This document shows, one piece after another, positions 1-33,700 of a stretch of 64,000 bases of DNA (the first letter of the stretch is position 1; each line of letters begins with the position of its first letter). The notes beneath the pieces are model-generated. The model was not told the DNA's origin, did not search any database, and saw nothing but the letters and a program-made list of their open reading frames with translations. Source of the DNA: Oculina patagonica (taxonomy: Eukaryota); NCBI RefSeq assembly GCF_052425735.1, contig NC_135763.1, forward strand, positions 10,292,001 to 10,356,000, read 5' to 3'. Both the position numbers and the translations under genes were made by a program.

Positions 1-473
1 TAGCTCGTTTTTAATTTTTTCCCTGGATAGACGTTAAATCGATTGAGTTTGTTTGGGGTTGGAGCTAGTTTCGCGTTTGTGAAAATTGATAAGGCGTGAG
101 CCAAAATAGCACGGGACTGAAGTCACGCAAAAACAAATGCAAAATTAATCACCTGTAAAATCTAGAGGAATTAATTTTGAATAACTTATTGTAAAGGGAA
201 CTAGATTGGCAACGACTGTAAGTCAAAAATAACATAAAAGGAAATGGGCAGTTTAACCCAACTCAAGAACAATCCGCAACTTATATCTCCTTTCTTGTAT
301 CAATAAAGTATCAATATTTGTCAAGAAGATGGCTAATGAGAATGTAAATTTTAATCATCAACTGGGAAATTATCAATTACCTTGTAATTACCTAACCCCC
401 CCCCCCCCCCAAGTCTCAAACCATAAAAATGTATATTTCACACAAAGTATATTGTTTTGTGTACCTATATATA

Positions 474-3900: not shown

Positions 3901-6900
3901 TTTAATTGTGAAAGTTTCATAATGGGTTGTACGGTAGGTTTTCGAGAAAATCTGGATCAAAATCTGGCTTTTACGACCTCCGAAGTGAATCAAATTGCGC
4001 GTGCGAGCGCGCGCTAATATGACGCCATGCGTCGCCAACGATAACGAAAGACAGAATAAGAACTTCTCTGTCGGTTTTTAATCCACATTTTTTGTCGTAT
4101 TGTTTTCCGTCCCAGGTTGAGAGGCCTATCTGAAAGTATTTTGAAGTTTTCTTTTGTACACAAATTTGGTAAAGCGCGGTAAAACAGGTGGAACTCTTTT
4201 TCGTTTCTGTTTAGAGTTGCTAGCGCCATTTTAGGCCGCGCGAGCAATAATGACGTCAAGCGGAAAATCGTAGCGCGCACCTTTGAGGCACGTAAAAACT
4301 GTATTCAGCCACCTTAATTATACTTCTCTCACCCAATCAGTATCCAGTAATCCAGTAATTCAGGCAGCGGAGCAGGGGGGCAGGGGGAGCTGTAGCCCTC
4401 CCTCCCAAACAAGACTTTTTGGGGCTCAACCGCTCACCCCCCCCCCCCCACACACACACACACATACCCTCACACACACACACACACACAAGTTTGGATA
4501 CTTAAAAAATCGAGAGCGCAGTGTAAAATTGGTTTGTCAAGATATTCCATTGATCCATTGATCCATTTCTTCAGGCTTCCTGACCATGTGTCATTTGAGG
4601 AGGGAGCTCTTCTAGAACCACTGTCTGTTGCTGTACATGCTTGCCATAGAGCCCACATCTCCATTGGAAGCAATGTGTTGATCTGTGGAGCCGGTGAGAA
4701 GTTTTACTCTAATTTAGCTGGTTTGCTGGTAAATAAAATCTGTCATGAAAATTTTGGCTCTAAACCGGTATTCAATAATGACCTTTAAGGTGGCTCCATA
4801 GGGTTTCTTGACCGCGCGAAGAATGGGTACGAGCTTGAAATGCCGGCAAATCAAAACAAACATGGCGGCTTCACGCGAGCGTGAAATTTTCGGCGAGAAA
4901 ACGCGAGACTTGCTTCCTGCCAATGAAATAACACCCGTGCTTTCCTGTGTTGAGCAGATAAAAGAGTTTACAACACCCTAAAAAGGTGTTTACAACGTCC
5001 GCGGTGCTTCTGGCCGCTTTTGTAAAGTTCGTACGATCGAAAGCAAAAGATAAAATAAAGAATAGTCTCCGCGATTGTAAGATACTTCGAGCAGAATTTC
5101 AGAGATTCTGCTACATAAAGGATTAAGGTATGTCTCTAACTAACCGTTGTGTTAACAGATATTCGCACAAAAACCGACAACAACGGGAAACGCTCGTCTT
5201 TACACATCAACTCGTATGGTTCGAAAGTTCGCGCATGCTCAAATAGCGATCTTGGACAATTTCTATTCTGATGATGTAATTGTTATTCGGGCGAAAATAG
5301 AAATTTTCCCCTGGTATTTACTAGAGTTTCCTTCGGTGAAATTCCTTAAAATTTGGCATAGATGTGATACCTTTTAAAGAATGTCAGTCGTTTCGCCTAC
5401 AAGTAGTTTCGCCTACAGGTTGATTCGCCTACAGTGAAGTCGATTCGCCTACACGACCTGAGTTGTTTCGCCTACACAAAAGTCGATTCGCCTACACTTT
5501 TTTTTCTCGAATTTGAAGTCTTCATCTTTAGTAAGGCGTATTTCTTAAGGTTGCGATCCGGGATTTTTATGTACTCGCCGGTCACGCGTAATGTTTGACT
5601 AGTATGGACTAGGAAGAAGACACAAGGCCTGGGACCGAGAAAGGATGTTCTCGCATCGCGCATAGCTTAGCGGTGCTACCTACGAAAAGAATTTTTTTCA
5701 TAAAGACATGAGGCAAATGTGTTAATCTGATTGCTTTAAAAGTCGCAAGAACATCTTTTCAAGGGAATGCATGGGTACCGGGTGAACTGGTTTTACAATA
5801 AAGCTTACTACGTCTTCACACTTAAATAACTTTTTTTATTTTAGTTCATAGTGGCTCTTAACCTAGTTTTTGACAACAGTTCTAATCTTACTCTTTTAAT
5901 TCAAACTAACTTTTGCTACAATTTCTTACGTGGCAAATGCTATTAATTGCTACTATTAAATAGATATTCCTAAGACCCTTATTGTTTCCTTATTGTTTTT
6001 TAATGGTTTGTTTAATTTGTTTGCTTCGGCGAAAATAACACACACATACCATCAAGTTAAGGTAAACTTTATTAGTATTGAACTTTATTTAGGTATTCCT
6101 CTCTTCTATCTTTCGGAACATAGCAAGCTTTGATGTAGGCGAATCGACTTTGGTGTAGGCGAAACAACTCAGGTTGTGTAGGCGAATCGACTTCACTGTA
6201 GGCGAATCGACCTGTAGGCGAAAATACTTGTAGGCGAAACAACCGGATACCCTTTTAAACTGCCCTTTTTGTCGTTTTTTTTAAAAAAATTTGTAAGCCA
6301 GTTTTTTTGCTTAGTCAAAAAAACACAAAATAACCAAAAACGCAAAAACGACCTGGACAACCCCTACTTTTTTTGTTTTTAAAAGTTACTTCTCATCAGA
6401 TTCAATCCGTTGGGAGAATTTAAAAATTTTTCACCGAAGAAAATTAAAGAAATTTAAGATCAAAACCATAAAAACACCAAAAAATAGGACTTTTTGAGTA
6501 GATTGTAGCTCAAAAACAAAGGCCGTTATTTTAAAAAAGAATAATGCACAACATATTTTAGTCCTTGTTTTTAATATTTCGGCAGCTTTTATTTATTACT
6601 AGTTTAAAAAATAACGCGAAAATGATCTCTTGATGGGTATCACTTCTGCGCGCGCCGTAATATCTCAAAACCCTATGGAGCCACCTTAAATAGTATTTTT
6701 TAATAACTTTAGAATTTTATAATGAACTTTAGTAATTTTTTAAGAATTTTAGAATTTTATAATGAATTTTAGTATTTTTTTAAGAATTTTAGTATTTTAT
6801 AATGAATTTTAGTATTTTAATAAATTTACTATTTTATCCTATTGTAATTTAAATATCTTATCTACTTCCTTTAATATTGTTTCGTTATTGTTCCTTATAT

Positions 6901-9507
6901 AAATATATTTCTTGTAAGAGCATTGAGATTTTTTAATGTAATGCGCAATAAATAAATTATTATTATATTATTATTATCTGGGAGGCCATGGGTTCGATTC
7001 CTGTCGGGGACTCAGAATTTTTCTTTGTCCCATGCTCATGGCTTTGTTGAAAAATTCATCTTCATTATTTATCACCAAGCTTGAAATTTGTCATCTTTAT
7101 TATTTACTACACACTTGATGATTTTGACATTGCTGATCCTAGCAGTATGCAGGACGCTTGTCACATATCAACCTAGTAAATGGCCAAGCTCTCTATGAGT
7201 CTCTCAAAGCTCAGTTGGTTAGAGCGCCCAACCGGTATCTGGGAGGCCATGGGTTCGATTCCCGTCGGGGACTCAGAACTTTCCTTTGTCCCATTCTCCT
7301 GTCATTGTTAAAAAATTCATCTTCATTATTTATCACCAAGCTTGAAATTTACCATCTTTATTATTTACTAATATTGGACCAGTTGTTAAATTTATTTAAC
7401 TGTATTTCTATTGCAGGTCCCATTGGTTTGGTGAACCTTATGACTGCCAAAGCTTGTGGTGCAAGTAAAGTAGCCATCACAGGTGAACACTGTTGTTGGT
7501 TTGTTACTAACAGGGAACTTTCAGATCAGAGTACGAGTATGAGATCGGGTACGAGTACAACCTTTGAATTTCAATCCAGTTATGTTCCCAGAGCCATCAC
7601 TTGATCGGTCGAAAAAGGAGACTATCGGTACCAGACTGGTGTGAAATTTTGATTATGTATTGACAGCATAAGCACTAGGTCAGAAAAGTCGTACTCTTAC
7701 TCAGTCTGAAGGTCCCTAAAAACATTTCTGAACTTAGGTTTCCATAGCTTCAATTGCCTAACTAGAAATATTAACTATATTTTGCTCCAACAGTTTATGT
7801 GCTTCTGATCAGTTTTATGTGGTTTTGATCAATTGAATAATCAAGAACATAGAGTGATTGATCAGCTGTCAACTTGTCTTTCAGATATCGATGAAGGCAG
7901 GCTAAACAAAGCTAAGGAACTTGGTGCTGACTATATCATCAAAGTGGATACCACCAAAGACAGCCGTGACTTGGCCAAGAAAATTGTTGATTGTCTGGGA
8001 ATGGCTGATCAAACCATTGAATGCAGTGGAGCTGAGTCAAGCTTCCATGCAGGAATTCATGTTAGTTGACTCTTGAATTCCCAAGAGGAATTAATATTAT
8101 TATCAAATTTTGCCTTAGTGTCACTCAATCTTGTTCCAAGAGCCATCTCTTCTTTAATGTCAGTACCAAGAATGTGAACTCTGGCCAAGTCTGATGTGAA
8201 AGGCCATGATTTGCAGATTTCTGGGCCAAAAACTTGTAGCCAAAAAATTCCAGTTGGAAAACGAATGGAACACTAATTATCTGGAAAATCTATTCGGAAA
8301 TGGCCGATTCCCTCTATGGTGCGATCCTGCAGGGAATCACGGTAGTTGTATTCATCATTGCGAAGTCTCGCGCATGGTTTGATGAACACAACGACCATGA
8401 TTCCTTGCAGGCGCGCGCCATAGAGGGAAATCGGCCATTGTGGACTAGGTTTTGATGTAGTCCCTTCATTCTGATTGGTACGAACCGTTGAAAAATTCTG
8501 AAACATTTGGTTTTTTTCCGGTTTTCAGTCTACCATCAAGGGAAAACAATAATATATTGTTAACTAAATTATACAGTCAGTTTGCTGTTTTTGAAAAAAC
8601 ACTTACCATTATTCAACATAATTCCAAATGGCAGGGCTGCAAATAACAGTTGGTCATTGGACATTGGCCGACCAAATTTGCTCATGTCTGACGAAATCCC
8701 AAGTGTGGTCGGACATGATGTCCGGACAATTTTTTGATCATAAATCATTTTATGGCAACAATGAATTAAATTAAACCTTTTGTTTTTGGGGATGTCCAAC
8801 CAAAATTTTGTTTTGTCCGACCATGATGGTGTCTTAGTAGGACATATGTCATTTCCTTTTAAGAAAAATATTTGCAGCCCTGAAATGGTAAACACCCCTG
8901 GTCATTTGCGCCTAAAGCTGATTGGCTAACAATTGAAAATGATTTATTTATTTATTTGTATTTGTTTGTTTGTTTATTTTTTACTCCATCTGCTACTCTG
9001 ACTCATGCATCTTTATTTTTAACTTTAAGGCAACTAAGCCAGGAGGCACACTTGTTGTAGTTGGATTGGGAAAGCCTGAAGTGCAATTTCCCATTGTGGA
9101 TGCTTTGGTTAGAGAAGTGGACATCAGAGGAATATTTAGATATGTTAACTGGTAAGTCAAGCATTCTCATCAGCGCCAAAATAATAGAGTTAAGGGAGTA
9201 CCCTCCCTCCCCCCCCCCCCCCACCATCACCTTGGCCTTGCCTCACTTCACTTCTCTGCACCATCCCACATCATGCTGTTCCTACCCTGGCATCAACACT
9301 TCATTTATTTGGTTTTATTGAATTTTGTATCACAGCTATCCGACAGCCCTGGCACTGGTTGCGTCTGGAGCAGTGAATGTCAAACCACTAATAACTCATC
9401 ACTTCAAACTTGAGCAGTCTCTTGATGCCTTTGAGACTTCAAGAACTGGTGCTGGAGGAGCAATAAAAGTAGTCATCCACTGCAATGAGGGATACCAGAC
9501 ACAATAG
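962..9507 (+). CDS. SORD: Sorbitol dehydrogenase (zinc MDR family), 5'-partial; exons 962-1126, 3141-3300, 4575-4693, 7417-7482, 7885-8060, 9030-9151, 9336-9507
   Basis: Spliced peptide has [26 protein letters not shown], the structural-Zn CxxCxxC...[15 protein letters not shown], the GAGPIG Rossmann motif, [11 protein letters not shown] and C-terminal IKVVIHC. All introns are GT-AG with matching phases; stop TAG at 9505-9507. The first exons were not found in the window. Confidence 0.96.
1600..1765 (-). mobile_element. CORE-like SINE, degenerate
   Basis: GGCACTGTGAGAGTAAAG...AAGAACACAACACA...CATTAGGCCAC. Confidence 0.65.
1806..2709. mobile_element. Non-autonomous hAT-like transposon
   Basis: TIR CATAGGCGTACG/CGTACGCCTATG; 8-bp TSD ATTGAATC at 1798-1805 and 2710-2717. 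Confidence 0.85.
3476..4313. mobile_element. Non-autonomous TTAA-specific (Kolobok-like) transposon
   Basis: TIR GGTGGCT(T/G)AATACAGTTTT, TTAA TSD, GG...CC termini. Confidence 0.8.
4789..6685. mobile_element. Non-autonomous TTAA-specific (Kolobok-like) transposon with a nested insertion
   Basis: TIR GGTGGCTCCATAGGGTTT; TTAA TSD on both sides. Confidence 0.85.
5379..6250. mobile_element. Mutator/foldback-like element with subterminal TTCGCCTACA arrays
   Basis: About 6 inverted repeat units at each end; 9-bp TSD CCTTTTAAA at 5370-5378 and 6251-6259. Confidence 0.8.
6692..6835. repeat. AT-rich minisatellite, ~20-bp unit (AATGAATTTTAGTATTTTAT-like)
   Basis: About 7 imperfect tandem units. Confidence 0.8.
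6976..7369 (+). mobile_element. tRNA-headed repeat in partial tandem (5'-truncated copy, linker, full copy)
   Basis: A box TAGCTCAGTTGG-like and B box GGTTCGATTCC. 6976-7109 repeats 7237-7369, and both end in ATCTTTATTATTTACTA. Confidence 0.8.
7512..7717. mobile_element. MITE (Harbinger-like)
   Basis: AGGGAACTTTCAGA...TCTGAAGGTCCCT with GAGTAC subterminal repeats. Confidence 0.6.
8299..8439. mobile_element. Palindromic MITE
   Basis: AATGGCCGATTCCCTCTATGG...CCATAGAGGGAAATCGGCCATT. Confidence 0.7.
8632..8882. mobile_element. MITE with CAGGG...CCCTG termini
   Basis: TIR CAGGGCTGCAAATA; flanking direct repeat AAATGG. Confidence 0.75.
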
Positions 9508-23690: not shown

Positions 23691-24915
23691 TGAATCTTTG
23701 TCAAGCGCTTTAGCGACAAATATTGTTAGGGAAGCCGTGCCGAATATGCCGTGTCTTTTCTATAATACAGCTCCAGTAGTCAGGCATTGAGGAAATTTGT
23801 ATGTGACTCATTACACCATTTTGCTTTCGCGAACTCCAAATCTTTTAAAGAATCCATTTTCTCGCCAAAAATTATTGCGAATGGCTAGAAAAAAAAGTTG
23901 TGTTTTATTTTCAACCGTTTTGTGTTTCGTTACATTTTATGTAAGCGCTGCACAAGAAAGAAGCACTTAACCAAACGGTATAGCCACTGGTACGAGTCGA
24001 ATTAATATGCCTTCTGTATTCCTCAAGCAAAATGCGTTTTTATGAGTAACTGCAGCAGCATAATTGCGTGTTATGCTTGACAACTGTCTTTTTTCCGGTG
24101 TTTGACCGGCGTGAAGACATTTGACTCATTGAATGAGCATACCGTTTCTTCAGTTTGAACTAAAGTTACATTTATGGCATTAGCCATGGTTCTTTTACTT
24201 TTAACTTGTATGCTTTAGTCAAAATATATGTGTCCGTGCCGTTATTCCCAAAGCCCAGTGTGAAAGCCCGCTTAATACGGAAACGCCGATAATACGGACA
24301 CTTTTGCGTGTCCCGTTGGTGCCCGTATTAACGGGGTTCCACTGTACAACATTCTACAAAGATTCATCTTTCATTTAGTGTGATTAATCATAATATCAAT
24401 GATATCACGAAGTCTATAAAGTCAAACACGTCACGATCAATTCATTTAAAAGTTCCTTATCAACTTTATGTCTACAGTGAAACAGCACTTTAAACCCACG
24501 CTTAACAGTTCGCTAAATTTCACTGAGGCTTGCATTTCATTTCTTCAGAAGAGCGTGGCAAACTTATGCCACGGGGCGTGACGTCCGTTCAGCTACACCA
24601 GTTTCTAAAAATTTTAATCAAATCACCACCGGCATTGGAAAATAAAACACACCGAAGTCTAAGCAACGTAAATTTAATTCACAGTTGTTTTTATGTCTGG
24701 ACCAATTGAGAACGAGCAGGAGTTTCTTCTGGCTGTTTCGCAATTCAAAAGGTGTTTTAAATTTCTCGACAATTAAAAACGATTTGAAGTTTCTGTGACA
24801 TTTTATTAAGGAGTTCGAAGTTAAACGGATCCAGCCTTTAATACGCAATTTCCTGTGTGATTCTACCTCGGTTACGGACGTTGAAGCCCAAAGCGTATTG
24901 ATAAAAAACGTAACT

Positions 24916-25071
24916 TCTACGAGTCTCTCGTAGCTCAGTTGGTTAGAGCGCCCAACCGGTATCTGGGAGGCCATGGGTTTGATTCTTTGTCCCATGCTCG
25001 TGTCATTGTTGAAAAATTCATCTTCATTATTTATCTCCGAGCTTAAAATTTACCATCTTTATTATTTACTA
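24916..25071 (+). mobile_element. tRNA-headed repeat, internally deleted copy
   Basis: Matches 7192-7369 with a deletion after the B box and has the same 3' end. Confidence 0.8.
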
Positions 25072-30700: not shown

Positions 30701-33700
30701 GAGTTGGATTGGTCTCGCATACAACATGTCAAGGAACATAACTACAGCCGAACCTTCACAGCGGTCAAACGCAAAAATCCAATGCCTTTAAAGAGAAAGT
30801 TTTCGGAAATTTAAGACGTTTGCATGGGGCAGTTTGGAGCAGTTTTAGCGGGAACTGCACACACGCGCGGTGTTTGACTGCTGCGTGAACTGCGTGAGTC
30901 CAACTCCTATTAAGTGGCGCGCGCCTTCAAAAAAATCGATATTTATCGCCGAAGTTTGATTTCTATCCCCAAATAAAGGGTATATCTTCAATTACATGTT
31001 CAAAGATAATGTTTTTCATGTGTAAAGTTGCCTACCATTTATTTCTAAACAGTTTAGACCAAAAATCTGCGAAATCTCAGTGACATAGTCCCTTTAAACG
31101 GCCATAATACTGTAAATAAAACCCTCAAAAGCGGCCACCTTTGTTTTGCCCCTATTTAGCAACCAGCTAGAATGTCATAAACGACGTTTGGCTTTGTTTC
31201 TACAAGATCATCACAGACATGACTCTTAAATGGAAGGTGACGACTGAAAATTCATTCAAACACAAGTTTATTGTCGTCTTCATGTCATTGCGTGATTCCT
31301 TTCCACGCTTTTCTTTGCAATGAAATAACGTGACATTTTAAAGAGACCTTACGCTTATTTCTGGCAAGGCCCTATAAAGAGGCCACTTGCCATTTCCCCG
31401 AGAGTGGCCACTTAATAGCGGATCTACTGTACAGTAAAAACCCGCGTATAAGAACCTAACATTTAAGAACCTGTTAGGCTAAAATTTCATTTTTAAGCAC
31501 CCTTCGCATAAGAACCATTTTAGGCTAAAATTCTAAAACAGGTTCTTATTTTCAAAAAAGAAAAAATAATCTTCTCAAAAATATAGAATTAAAAAATCTT
31601 CTCAAAAATATATTTATAACACAGTCTGTACACATTATAGTTACAGTATAGGTTTGATTTTAACACAATCAGATTAAAAGAGTATAGTATTTTGCTTACC
31701 GAAGCCTCCAAGAATACTGTTATTGGACATTAAAGACCAGATCATTTAAAAATTCTACATTATTTCTTGAACAAAAGTTAAGAACCTAATTAAGAACCTA
31801 GTTAGCCTAATTTCACACTTAATACCATTTATATAAGAACCTGTTTAGGCTAACTTGAAAAAACCTAGGTTCTTATACGCGGGTTTTTACTGTATTCACT
31901 AAAACCCTGTGATTAAATCTCTGTTACTTACCCTGTGAAGTTCCACACCGTAGTACTTGACTAAGCTTTCATGTCTGATACCTTCAAAGTTCTTAATTTC
32001 GTCAGCAAGATCCCTTATTTCACCATGATCATTTGGCTGGAACTTGATCTAGTGACAAAATTATCAAACAGTAAATATCCTGTACAGTCATTTAAAATAC
32101 AAGGCAGTAATATAACAACTGAACAGTGCTAAACACAAAGAAGGACAATGCTAAGCTCGATCATTTATAACCGTGTTCAGTTTGTTGCGAGCGTGGGACA
32201 AAGAAAAAATTCTGACTCTCAGAAGGGAATCGAACCCATAAACTACCCAGCTACCTGTATTTGCTTCGAGTTTTGACTGGTTCACTGGATTGTCGGTCTC
32301 CTTTGTGATTGGCCAGAGTGAATACTTTGGTTTCAGTTTTACAACACTCAATCAAAAATCGCCTTAACAGTTCTCCATTTAGTTGAACATTTTTTACAAA
32401 GCCGCTCAAGTATTCTCACCTGTTTCACGGCCATCACTTCCCCGGTATCCAAATTAACACATGCATAAACTTTTCCAAACTGACCTTCACCTACAGTTCA
32501 TACAGTGAGAAACAATAAAAACAACATTTTTATAGATAATTATTTAAAATACGACGCACAGAGGAGTATTTTTGGCGAACTTCGAGGTGTTTAGAAATGT
32601 GATGACACTCTCTCTCTCTCAAGCGTTTGATATATATTCTCAATCGGAAATAAATCTAAGGAGTAAACGGAGAAATAAAATCTATGCTAAATGAGATCAG
32701 ATTTCCACACCACTTGGAATGGTTATTTATATGGTTTACTTTGTTTGAACTTGATGAGCTAACAATGAGTTTGAGAATCCACGTTCCAGTATCTCCACAT
32801 AGTTTGAATGAAAACAGATTTTTTTGGCGACAAGGGGTTTGTTAGGGTGATCTGAAGTCACCTCTTCAAGAGCGAAAACCTGCATGACAGTGACTTCACC
32901 GCGGTGACAGTGACAGTGACAGTGACAGTGACTTCAGGCAGCTTTTCTTACCATTTCGGCGTTTTTTGTTCAAATTGAAGTGTTAGTATGAGCAAGAATA
33001 GATAAAAATAGTTGCTGAGTGTAAGCATAATCCCATTTCCTCAGGTAAACGAGTGTTTTTTTCTTTTAAATGTTCCGCATCCAAACCAAAATGACAAATG
33101 ACAAATGGCGCCGACAAGTCCGCATATTGCTTTTTTCAAACACGTAGAACTTTTTTAGTAAAGCTCCAAAAAACTTAGTAAACCCTTAGGATACCGGTTA
33201 TGTATCGAACTTTGAACAGTGAAAATTAAAACCTTATCTTTGCAGTACTTTTCTTATTTTTTGCATATTTCTGTCGTTTGACCGCGGTCAAGACAGTGAC
33301 ACACTATACAAACAAAATGTAACCACCACCACTTACCAATCTTGTTTCCTCGTTGCCACTTGAATGGAACCTTCCTGCTGGAAATGCTTGCCAGCTCCTT
33401 GACAATATCACGGCGTCTGTTGCTCACACGGCCAATAACATGCTTATCATACAAATACTGGTTTCTCTTTATCTCCAATTTCTTCAAGGAGTGGCGCACT
33501 TTTTCTAGCCTTGATGCGTCCGGTGCTCCCGCGAAGCTGTCTTTATGTTTTGCAGTTTCTTTTTCTCCTTCATCGCCGCTTTCACCCTCAGCATTGTTCG
33601 CTGGAGAAGGAGACTTTTTGATTAATAACTAATTACTTGATAAAATTTCAATTTTTTTCCCGGACACATTTTACAGACACCCTTCAAAGAAAGCAATTTT

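Follow-up and report, generated by a model that had tools for sequence, protein, structure and literature searches.

What machinery inserts a short repeat with a transfer RNA (tRNA)-like part into the genome of the coral Oculina patagonica, when the repeat itself encodes no protein? The question is raised by the locus 6976-7370 of the window analysed here, a stretch of 64,000 nucleotides (nt) of contig NC_135763.1, in which one such repeat, a member of a family with a unit of 261 bp, lies close to a hammerhead ribozyme motif with which it shares an identical 14-mer. Our analysis leads us to regard 6976-7370 as probably the insertion of a non-coding, non-autonomous retroelement that was copied and pasted by the reverse transcriptase (RT) and endonuclease (EN) of a Penelope-like element (PLE). 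That the 261-bp family is a PLE-mobilised passenger is well supported, mainly by the anatomy of its insertions; which PLE served as helper, and whether the shared 14-mer has any part in the process, are separate matters that are weighed below.

The repeating unit was evident from Tandem Repeats Finder (TRF), which returned a period of 261 bp for an array of 11.1 copies at 97% (locus L008), and all unit coordinates used here are those of a consensus taken as the majority of 47 full-length copies. The unit has a GC content of 44%, contains no open reading frame (ORF) and is composed, from 5′ to 3′, of a hairpin, a tRNA-like module, a run of five T residues (T5) and an AT-rich end region (Table 1), the last of which holds two end sites, CTTCATTATT and CTTTATTATTTAC, separated by about 40 nt. 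A previous sequence-only reading of the window had considered 7102-7181 to be a linker. This view had to be abandoned because the 84-nt stretch 7110-7193 is itself repeated, with more than 480 candidate matches in the genome (the best at 96-98% identity), is always found between copies of the tRNA-like part and forms an integral part of the unit defined by TRF. The nested stems that had been proposed for the former linker do fold as a hairpin (-21.9 kcal/mol, z = -2.5), and the lower stem is dispensable, because there are 249-bp variants of the unit that are missing 10 nt of its 3′ arm and keep the apex. The kinship proposed for three copies in the window also stood: 6976-7370, which is a single 1.5-unit insertion of two head-to-tail copies, the fold-back at 13316-13558 and the monomer at 24919-25069 all belong to one family.

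How were these copies made? The genome searched comprised 529 Mb, in which the hairpin is present at least 1,300 times (a 21-mer of the 261-bp-family context was found 1,313 times and its reversed control 0 times). The copies occur singly, in partial tandems, in arrays of up to 11 units and in inverted pairs with their 3′ ends outward (tail-out). A survey of 60 loci of ~3 kb each, together with the window, gave 45-48 distinct insertions. The 3′ ends of these insertions fall at two sites only, unit 216-226 (short end) and unit 254-261 (long end), so that the single end point once proposed for all copies must be replaced by two alternatives. The 71 arm 5′ ends are scattered across the whole unit. 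They cluster immediately before the hairpin apex, at unit 22-33 (window 7131-7142; 11 ends, 3.3 expected), and again at unit 234-239 (window 7343-7348; 9 ends, 1.6 expected), and they are not enriched at the tRNA start, unit 86-98 (4 ends, 3.5 expected). The cluster at 234-239 lies ~25 nt before the unit end, and many insertions open with a short copy of the unit's final 12-28 nt.

Many of the insertions cross at least one unit junction, partial tandems are found independently at dozens of loci and a second, inverted arm is frequently present at the 5′ side. In 15 of the 17 two-armed insertions one arm has the short end and the other the long end (binomial p = 0.001), the two being ~40 nt apart, and the fold-back at 13316-13558 obeys the same rule. 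The orientation of the arms is equally regular, all eight inverted hairpin pairs on one contig (C1) being arranged minus-then-plus, that is, tail-out. Exact target-site duplications (TSDs) of at least 7 bp were found at 42% of 45 insertions, compared to 3.6% when flanks of different loci were paired, and they enclose entire composite structures and arrays. The window provides an example in the 15-bp duplication ATTATTGGAGTAGTT that flanks the fold-back (13303-13317 and 13559-13573); for 6976-7370, whose flanks are AT-rich and of low complexity, no TSD could be called unambiguously.

According to Craig et al. 2021 (PMC8557442), PLEs are marked by strong truncation at the 5′ end, by partial tandems, by a neighbouring copy that is inverted and itself 5′-truncated, and by a tail of 30-40 bp that frequently occurs on just one side. 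The 261-bp family shows all of these traits, having variable 5′ truncation, fixed 3′ ends, TSDs of variable length, partial tandems, tail-out inverted arms that are 5′-truncated and a one-sided tail of ~40 nt, and the suspicion that it behaves like a Penelope-mobilised element is thus borne out. Such insertion traits are not features of DNA transposons or of short interspersed elements (SINEs) mobilised by long interspersed elements (LINEs). Where the family does differ from PLEs is in its lack of an ORF and of a hammerhead, in its size (261 bp versus 3-4 kb) and in its long arrays.

Because the fixed ends lie on the tRNA-sense strand, that strand was the template. In the mechanism we propose, copying would begin at one of the two internal AT-rich sites and run on through the junctions between units, synthesis would be primed from both sides of the target and so give rise to tail-out arms, and the product would come to be flanked by a duplication of ~7-15 bp; the start sites, the crossing of junctions, the priming from two sides and the duplication can all be read directly from the insertions. 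The template RNA may well have been longer than one unit, as a concatemer, as a circle or, in effect, through serial template jumps.

Could the family instead be an ordinary tRNA-derived SINE, transcribed by RNA polymerase III (Pol III) from its A and B boxes, mobilised by a LINE and expanded into tandems later in the manner of a satellite? The tRNA-like part, with its A box and B box, is real, as had been claimed: Rfam tRNA matches 7208-7265 with 34.3 bits and 13472-13542 with 35.9 bits (gathering score 29), and the cloverleaf is nearly complete in the consensus. Its anticodon loop is non-canonical, and ARAGORN called no tRNA in the module. As in SINEs, these boxes are carried by an element that is non-autonomous and retrotransposed with TSDs, and higher-order periodicity in some arrays (alternating 249-/259-bp units and a 3-unit super-repeat, in L005 and L016 and in L010, L011 and L013) suggests that arrays are also able to grow after insertion. 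Unlike in SINEs, however, the tRNA-like part is internal and is followed by the T5 terminator, and because this terminator lies six nt past the module, at the place that it occupies in tRNA genes, a Pol III transcript would stop before the sites at which reverse transcription starts. Nor do the insertions resemble those of SINEs: their 5′ ends do not coincide with the start of Pol III transcription, tail-out arms of which one ends short and the other long are foreign to LINEs and SINEs, and partial tandems are seen at dozens of separate loci. A poly-A or simple-repeat tail is also lacking, as had been noted and as we saw in the window sequence. The RNA data point the same way on transcription, two small-RNA libraries of ~6.8 million reads each having contained only 10 and 1 family reads. 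Consequently, the description of the family as Pol III-driven could not be upheld; a SINE made by Pol III is unlikely, and the complete scenario, with LINE mobilisation and later satellite growth, we consider very improbable. In two poly-A libraries there were 40 and 85 family reads, which represent both strands and most of which continue into dissimilar sequence, a pattern that fits read-through of intronic copies.

If a PLE is responsible, which PLE was it? A candidate lies in the window itself, and our attention was drawn to it by the hammerhead at 23545-23593, which is composed of stem I (ATCGC/GCGAT), the core CTGATGA, a bulged stem II, GAAA and, in place of helix III, ACGT. The complete core is at 23554-23587, stem II folds as predicted and cleavage is predicted after 23587. 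Although Rfam hammerhead models gave no match to 23545-23593 even at E = 10, we take it to be a minimal, dimer-type hammerhead as in PLEs. Minimal dimeric hammerheads of PLEs reportedly have a full core and a palindrome that replaces helix III. Both are present at 23545-23593, whereas in the hairpin of the 261-bp family the stem II apex and a neighbouring palindrome are retained, CUGAUGA is shortened to CUGAU and GAAA is absent. Minimal hammerhead variants have also been mentioned for Acropora (PMC7229834).

The hammerhead is not part of a 206-bp element, an owner that we considered and rejected as the flanks of other copies show the 5′-truncated end of a longer element, here named PLE-A. Upstream, its copies share more than 1.5 kb of homologous sequence at 97-100% identity and are truncated at variable points, and their open frame encodes an RT domain (RVT_1, E = 1e-8) and, at its C-terminus, a GIY-YIG signature (…IPCECGKVYIGETGR…) that was read by eye, Pfam GIY-YIG not reaching E = 0.01. 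In longer copies this ORF ends 25 nt upstream of the equivalent of 23480, which places the hammerhead in the 3′ untranslated region (UTR). With RT and GIY-YIG motif in hand, we can agree that the hammerhead carrying the shared 14-mer belongs to a Penelope-like element, and PLE-A is a young autonomous one. It is probably transcribed, because contigs of RNA runs (according to run metadata) hold about half of the words of its 3′ UTR. The window copy is flanked by a 12-bp TSD, TATTTGAATCTT (23454-23465 and 23687-23698), and at its 5′ junction, where the truncated copy begins, there is a 10-nt direct duplication (GACTGCTGTT twice).

PLE-A follows the insertion rules of the 261-bp family. Its head-to-head hammerhead pairs are tail-out in 17 of 17 cases, and its inverted arms end at …ACTTTATTATT (23643-23646) while direct arms continue 41-45 nt further. 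In its 3′ UTR the hammerhead is followed by ...CTTTATTATT and then by a tail of ~41 nt, an order it has in common with the 261-bp unit: hairpin or hammerhead, a body ending in CTTYATTATT and a tail of ~40 nt, to which the unit adds its tRNA-like module. It is because of this matching order of modules that we favor the PLE-A lineage as the most likely source of the RT/EN that would have copied the family. PLEs are abundant in this genome, with more than 860 GIY-YIG candidates, and another one with RT and GIY-YIG (at L082) has different hammerheads downstream and no similarity to the 261-bp unit.

A further connection between the two elements is the 14-mer itself, which, as had been reported, is identical at 7139-7152, in the apex of the hairpin, and at 23564-23577, in stem II of the hammerhead. 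These are its sole matches in the window even with one mismatch allowed (chance expectation 0.03). Genome-wide it occurs 1,855 times (reversed control 0); 1,313 of these occurrences sit within an exact match to the 21-mer of the 261-bp family and 139 are between a hammerhead core and GAAA, nearly all of them of the PLE-A type, while the remaining sites are most simply copies with mutated flanks. The 14-mer is found in the consensus of both families, as the sequence-only reading had led one to expect, and belongs to essentially no other. In both contexts it is preceded directly by CTGAT and followed directly by a palindrome, ACGCGT in the 261-bp consensus and ACGT in the PLE-A hammerhead (23583-23586). 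The ACGT of the hammerhead may let two RNAs pair, and the passenger RNA might likewise dimerise via its own palindrome. The apex may be what the PLE enzyme recognises, a handle that the passenger would have derived from a hammerhead; the descent of the hairpin from stem II is plausible but unproven.

It is also possible, if in our estimation rather unlikely, that the shared 14-mer has no function, being a chance match or a scrap left by a template switch, and that PLE machinery recognises something else, for example the AT-rich end only. Support for this can be found in the absence of any significant similarity between unit and PLE-A 3′ UTR beyond the 14-mer: in extended alignments with softer gap costs the observed score was reached by 202/500, 31/500 or 6/500 shuffles, depending on the scoring, and the comparison of the two tails gave p of about 0.05-0.1. 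Covariation in the hairpin lends no help either, as the changes counted in 54 copies comprised 23 one-sided ones, 33 breaks and no compensatory double, although this result is uninformative because the family, with ~3% divergence, is too young. Also, Naiad PLEs spread without hammerheads (PMC8557442). A functionless 14-mer is, however, difficult to reconcile with four other results. A shuffled PLE 3′ UTR attained a match this good in only 2 of 1,000 trials; in hairpin and hammerhead alike, the 14-mer folds into an identical bulged stem-loop; a palindrome comes next in both families; and the 14-mer falls within the least variable stretch of the unit, where the 14-nt windows at positions 19-43 have 2 mismatches in 266 cells versus 8.8 expected (p = 0.007), in a test on 19 copies that were picked via tRNA and tail rather than hairpin and among which copies within one array are not independent.

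Both the lack of extended similarity and the covariation counts speak against our interpretation as a whole, and they do not stand alone. There is a mismatch in age: copies of the 261-bp family diverge from their consensus by ~3% on average (the youngest by ~1%), compared with the 97-100% identity among PLE-A copies, so most amplification of the family predates the present PLE-A burst. AT-rich ends resembling 'CATTTATTT' also occur in an unrelated family with a unit of 268 bp, so that the helper cannot be identified from the end motif alone. Post-insertion growth of arrays means, in turn, that TSDs around long arrays are no proof that multimers were inserted. The RNA reads are few, derive from both strands and are without joints or ends. 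Finally, the helper enzyme is assigned only provisionally, by insertion anatomy and module order. Even so, we still favor mobilisation by a PLE, whose signature is in the insertions themselves, over the alternatives.

How does such a passenger compare with the retrozymes? Metazoan non-LTR (non-long terminal repeat) retrozymes are protein-free elements of 150-450 bp with low GC and TSDs of more than 4 bp, which are thought to ride on PLEs (Cervera and de la Pena 2020, PMC7229834), and those of the coral Acropora millepora are tandem units of 220-245 bp, each with an active type I hammerhead, from which abundant circular RNA is made (PMC7229834). The 261-bp family resembles them in its short, protein-free, low-GC tandem units, its TSDs and its coral host, and is unlike them in having a tRNA-like module and no catalytic core, and in that no circular or abundant RNA was seen among the few reads. 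It works like a PLE passenger or retrozyme, yet the hammerhead that defines a retrozyme is missing. In the literature, PMC7229834 and PMC8557442 included and Repbase and Dfam outside the search, we found no retrozyme-like element that bears a tRNA and lacks a hammerhead.

Might the unit nevertheless be a true retrozyme that cleaves itself by means of an unrecognised or split ribozyme? Its size and GC content are near those of the coral retrozymes (PMC7229834). Motif reading, however, revealed no CUGANGA...GAAA core within the unit, Rfam searches to E = 10 returned the tRNA and no ribozyme family, and a genome-wide pattern search found a hammerhead core upstream of a tRNA of the 261-bp-family type 0 times. 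We regard self-cleavage as extremely improbable. The whole unit, folded as a circle, gave z = -1.3 and no viroid-like rod.

The 268-bp family provides an instructive counterpart. Fifteen kb before the window (L081, 4201-4863) there is a 2.5-unit array of this family, in which, as in the 261-bp family, a T-run (T7) comes after the tRNA-like module (Rfam 54 bits) of the tandem unit and an inverted arm is present, with one end of the insertion short and the other long. Unlike the 261-bp unit, every 268-bp unit has a hammerhead core (CTGAGGA...GAAA). We considered whether the two families are relatives in sequence and rejected this, as no similarity was found beyond the tRNA features.

Such modules thus recur, and one can ask what they do. 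Did RNase P and RNase Z cut tandem transcripts at the tRNA-like module, in replacement of a lost hammerhead, and release an RNA that served as the PLE template? This would make the family an analogue of the retrozymes, and the preservation of a nearly complete cloverleaf in the consensus, like the pairing of module and hammerhead core in the 268-bp family, is in its favor. Ends made by RNase P and RNase Z are, however, not known to be joined by RtcB, the ligase used by retrozymes. Moreover, insertion 5′ ends are not clustered at the tRNA borders, and the family reads in four raw runs, few as they are, include no circular or other joints and no defined or preferred ends. These reads, being too few, neither support nor count against a retrozyme-like RNA cycle; on balance we think it quite unlikely that tRNA enzymes released the template. 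A wider proposal, that Penelope-dependent mini-elements of corals swapped the hammerhead for a tRNA-like module, left the RNA work to host tRNA enzymes or Pol III and kept the stem II tip as a handle for the RT, is unlikely too.

Table 1. Modules of the 261-bp unit and their counterparts, with related features, in the window. Unit coordinates refer to the consensus.
Feature	Unit position	Window position	Strand	Basis or remarks
Hairpin module, consensus	1-72			14-mer at 30-43; palindrome ACGCGT at 45-50
tRNA-like module, consensus	90-164			A box 98-109; B box 143-153
T5 run, consensus	170-174			Six nt past tRNA-like module
Short-end motif CATCTTCATTATTTA, consensus	209-223
Long-end motif CATCTTTATTATTTAC, consensus	244-259
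5′-truncated upstream unit	127-261	6976-7109	+	BLAST versus unit, 92.5% identity; intact T5 at 7018-7022
One complete 261-bp unit		7110-7370	+	16 differences versus family consensus
Hairpin module	1-72	7110-7181	+	Apex 14-mer at 7139-7152
tRNA-like module	90-164	7199-7273	+	A/B boxes; Rfam tRNA match
Short-end motif CATCTTCATTATTTA	209-223	7318-7332	+	One of two alternative 3′ ends
Long-end motif	244-261	7353-7370	+	3′ end of 6976-7370 insertion
Tail-out inverted pair		13316-13558	.	Left arm long end, right arm short end
5′-truncated copy of PLE-A 3′ UTR		23466-23686	+	Flank comparison of copies
Minimal hammerhead of PLE-A		23545-23593	+	Read from sequence; stem II holds 14-mer 23564-23577
5′-truncated single copy	~86-259	24919-25069	+	Internal deletion of ~24 nt
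Short family fragment	122-190	32188-32258	+

The copies in the window have diverged from the consensus in several places. In the complete unit at 7110-7370 the palindrome ACGCGT has mutated to ACGCTT (7154-7159) and the T5 run (7279-7283) is also mutated. The deletion in 24919-25069 takes out the 3′ part of the tRNA and the T5; we considered whether this copy belongs to a sizeable subfamily without terminator and rejected the idea, as its best other match is 92%. Directly upstream of the 6976-7370 insertion, at 6700-6830, there is an AT-rich minisatellite with a period of ~31 bp. The insertion is intronic, and ~46 nt beyond it is an exon (from 7417) that resembles a sorbitol-dehydrogenase-type protein.

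The region upstream of the PLE-A copy also has features of its own. An intronless ORF of 197 aa at 21364-21957 has a class I S-adenosylmethionine (SAM)-methyltransferase motif (LDLGCGTG), and 3′ of it, at 22295-22323, is a second hammerhead-like string, CCGATGAAGACATTGTCGAAA, in which C replaces the core U. Between this string and the PLE-A copy lies a long imperfect inverted repeat (22920-23270) with arms of ~60-70 nt (~22950-23010 and 23200-23260), possibly an element like a miniature inverted-repeat transposable element (MITE).

The role of hammerheads in PLEs has been described as “still unclear” (Craig et al. 2021, PMC8557442). The 261-bp family offers a natural comparison, since it is abundant and has the full Penelope insertion signature and no catalytic core, and since it preserves letter for letter, within its least variable stretch, the tip of stem II from a PLE hammerhead of the same genome. 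Two ideas thereby become testable, that self-cleavage is unneeded for mobilisation in trans and that stem II is a possible recognition element. If the reading of the stem II tip as a handle is true, it would separate two roles proposed for PLE hammerheads, cutting and recognition. The rules of one short and one long end and of tail-out arms, derived here from dozens of small insertions, constrain any model of Penelope integration, and tRNA-like modules with terminators of their own recur among Penelope passengers. As the 261-bp family shows, searches for retrozymes that are keyed to the hammerhead overlook a whole set of Penelope passengers.

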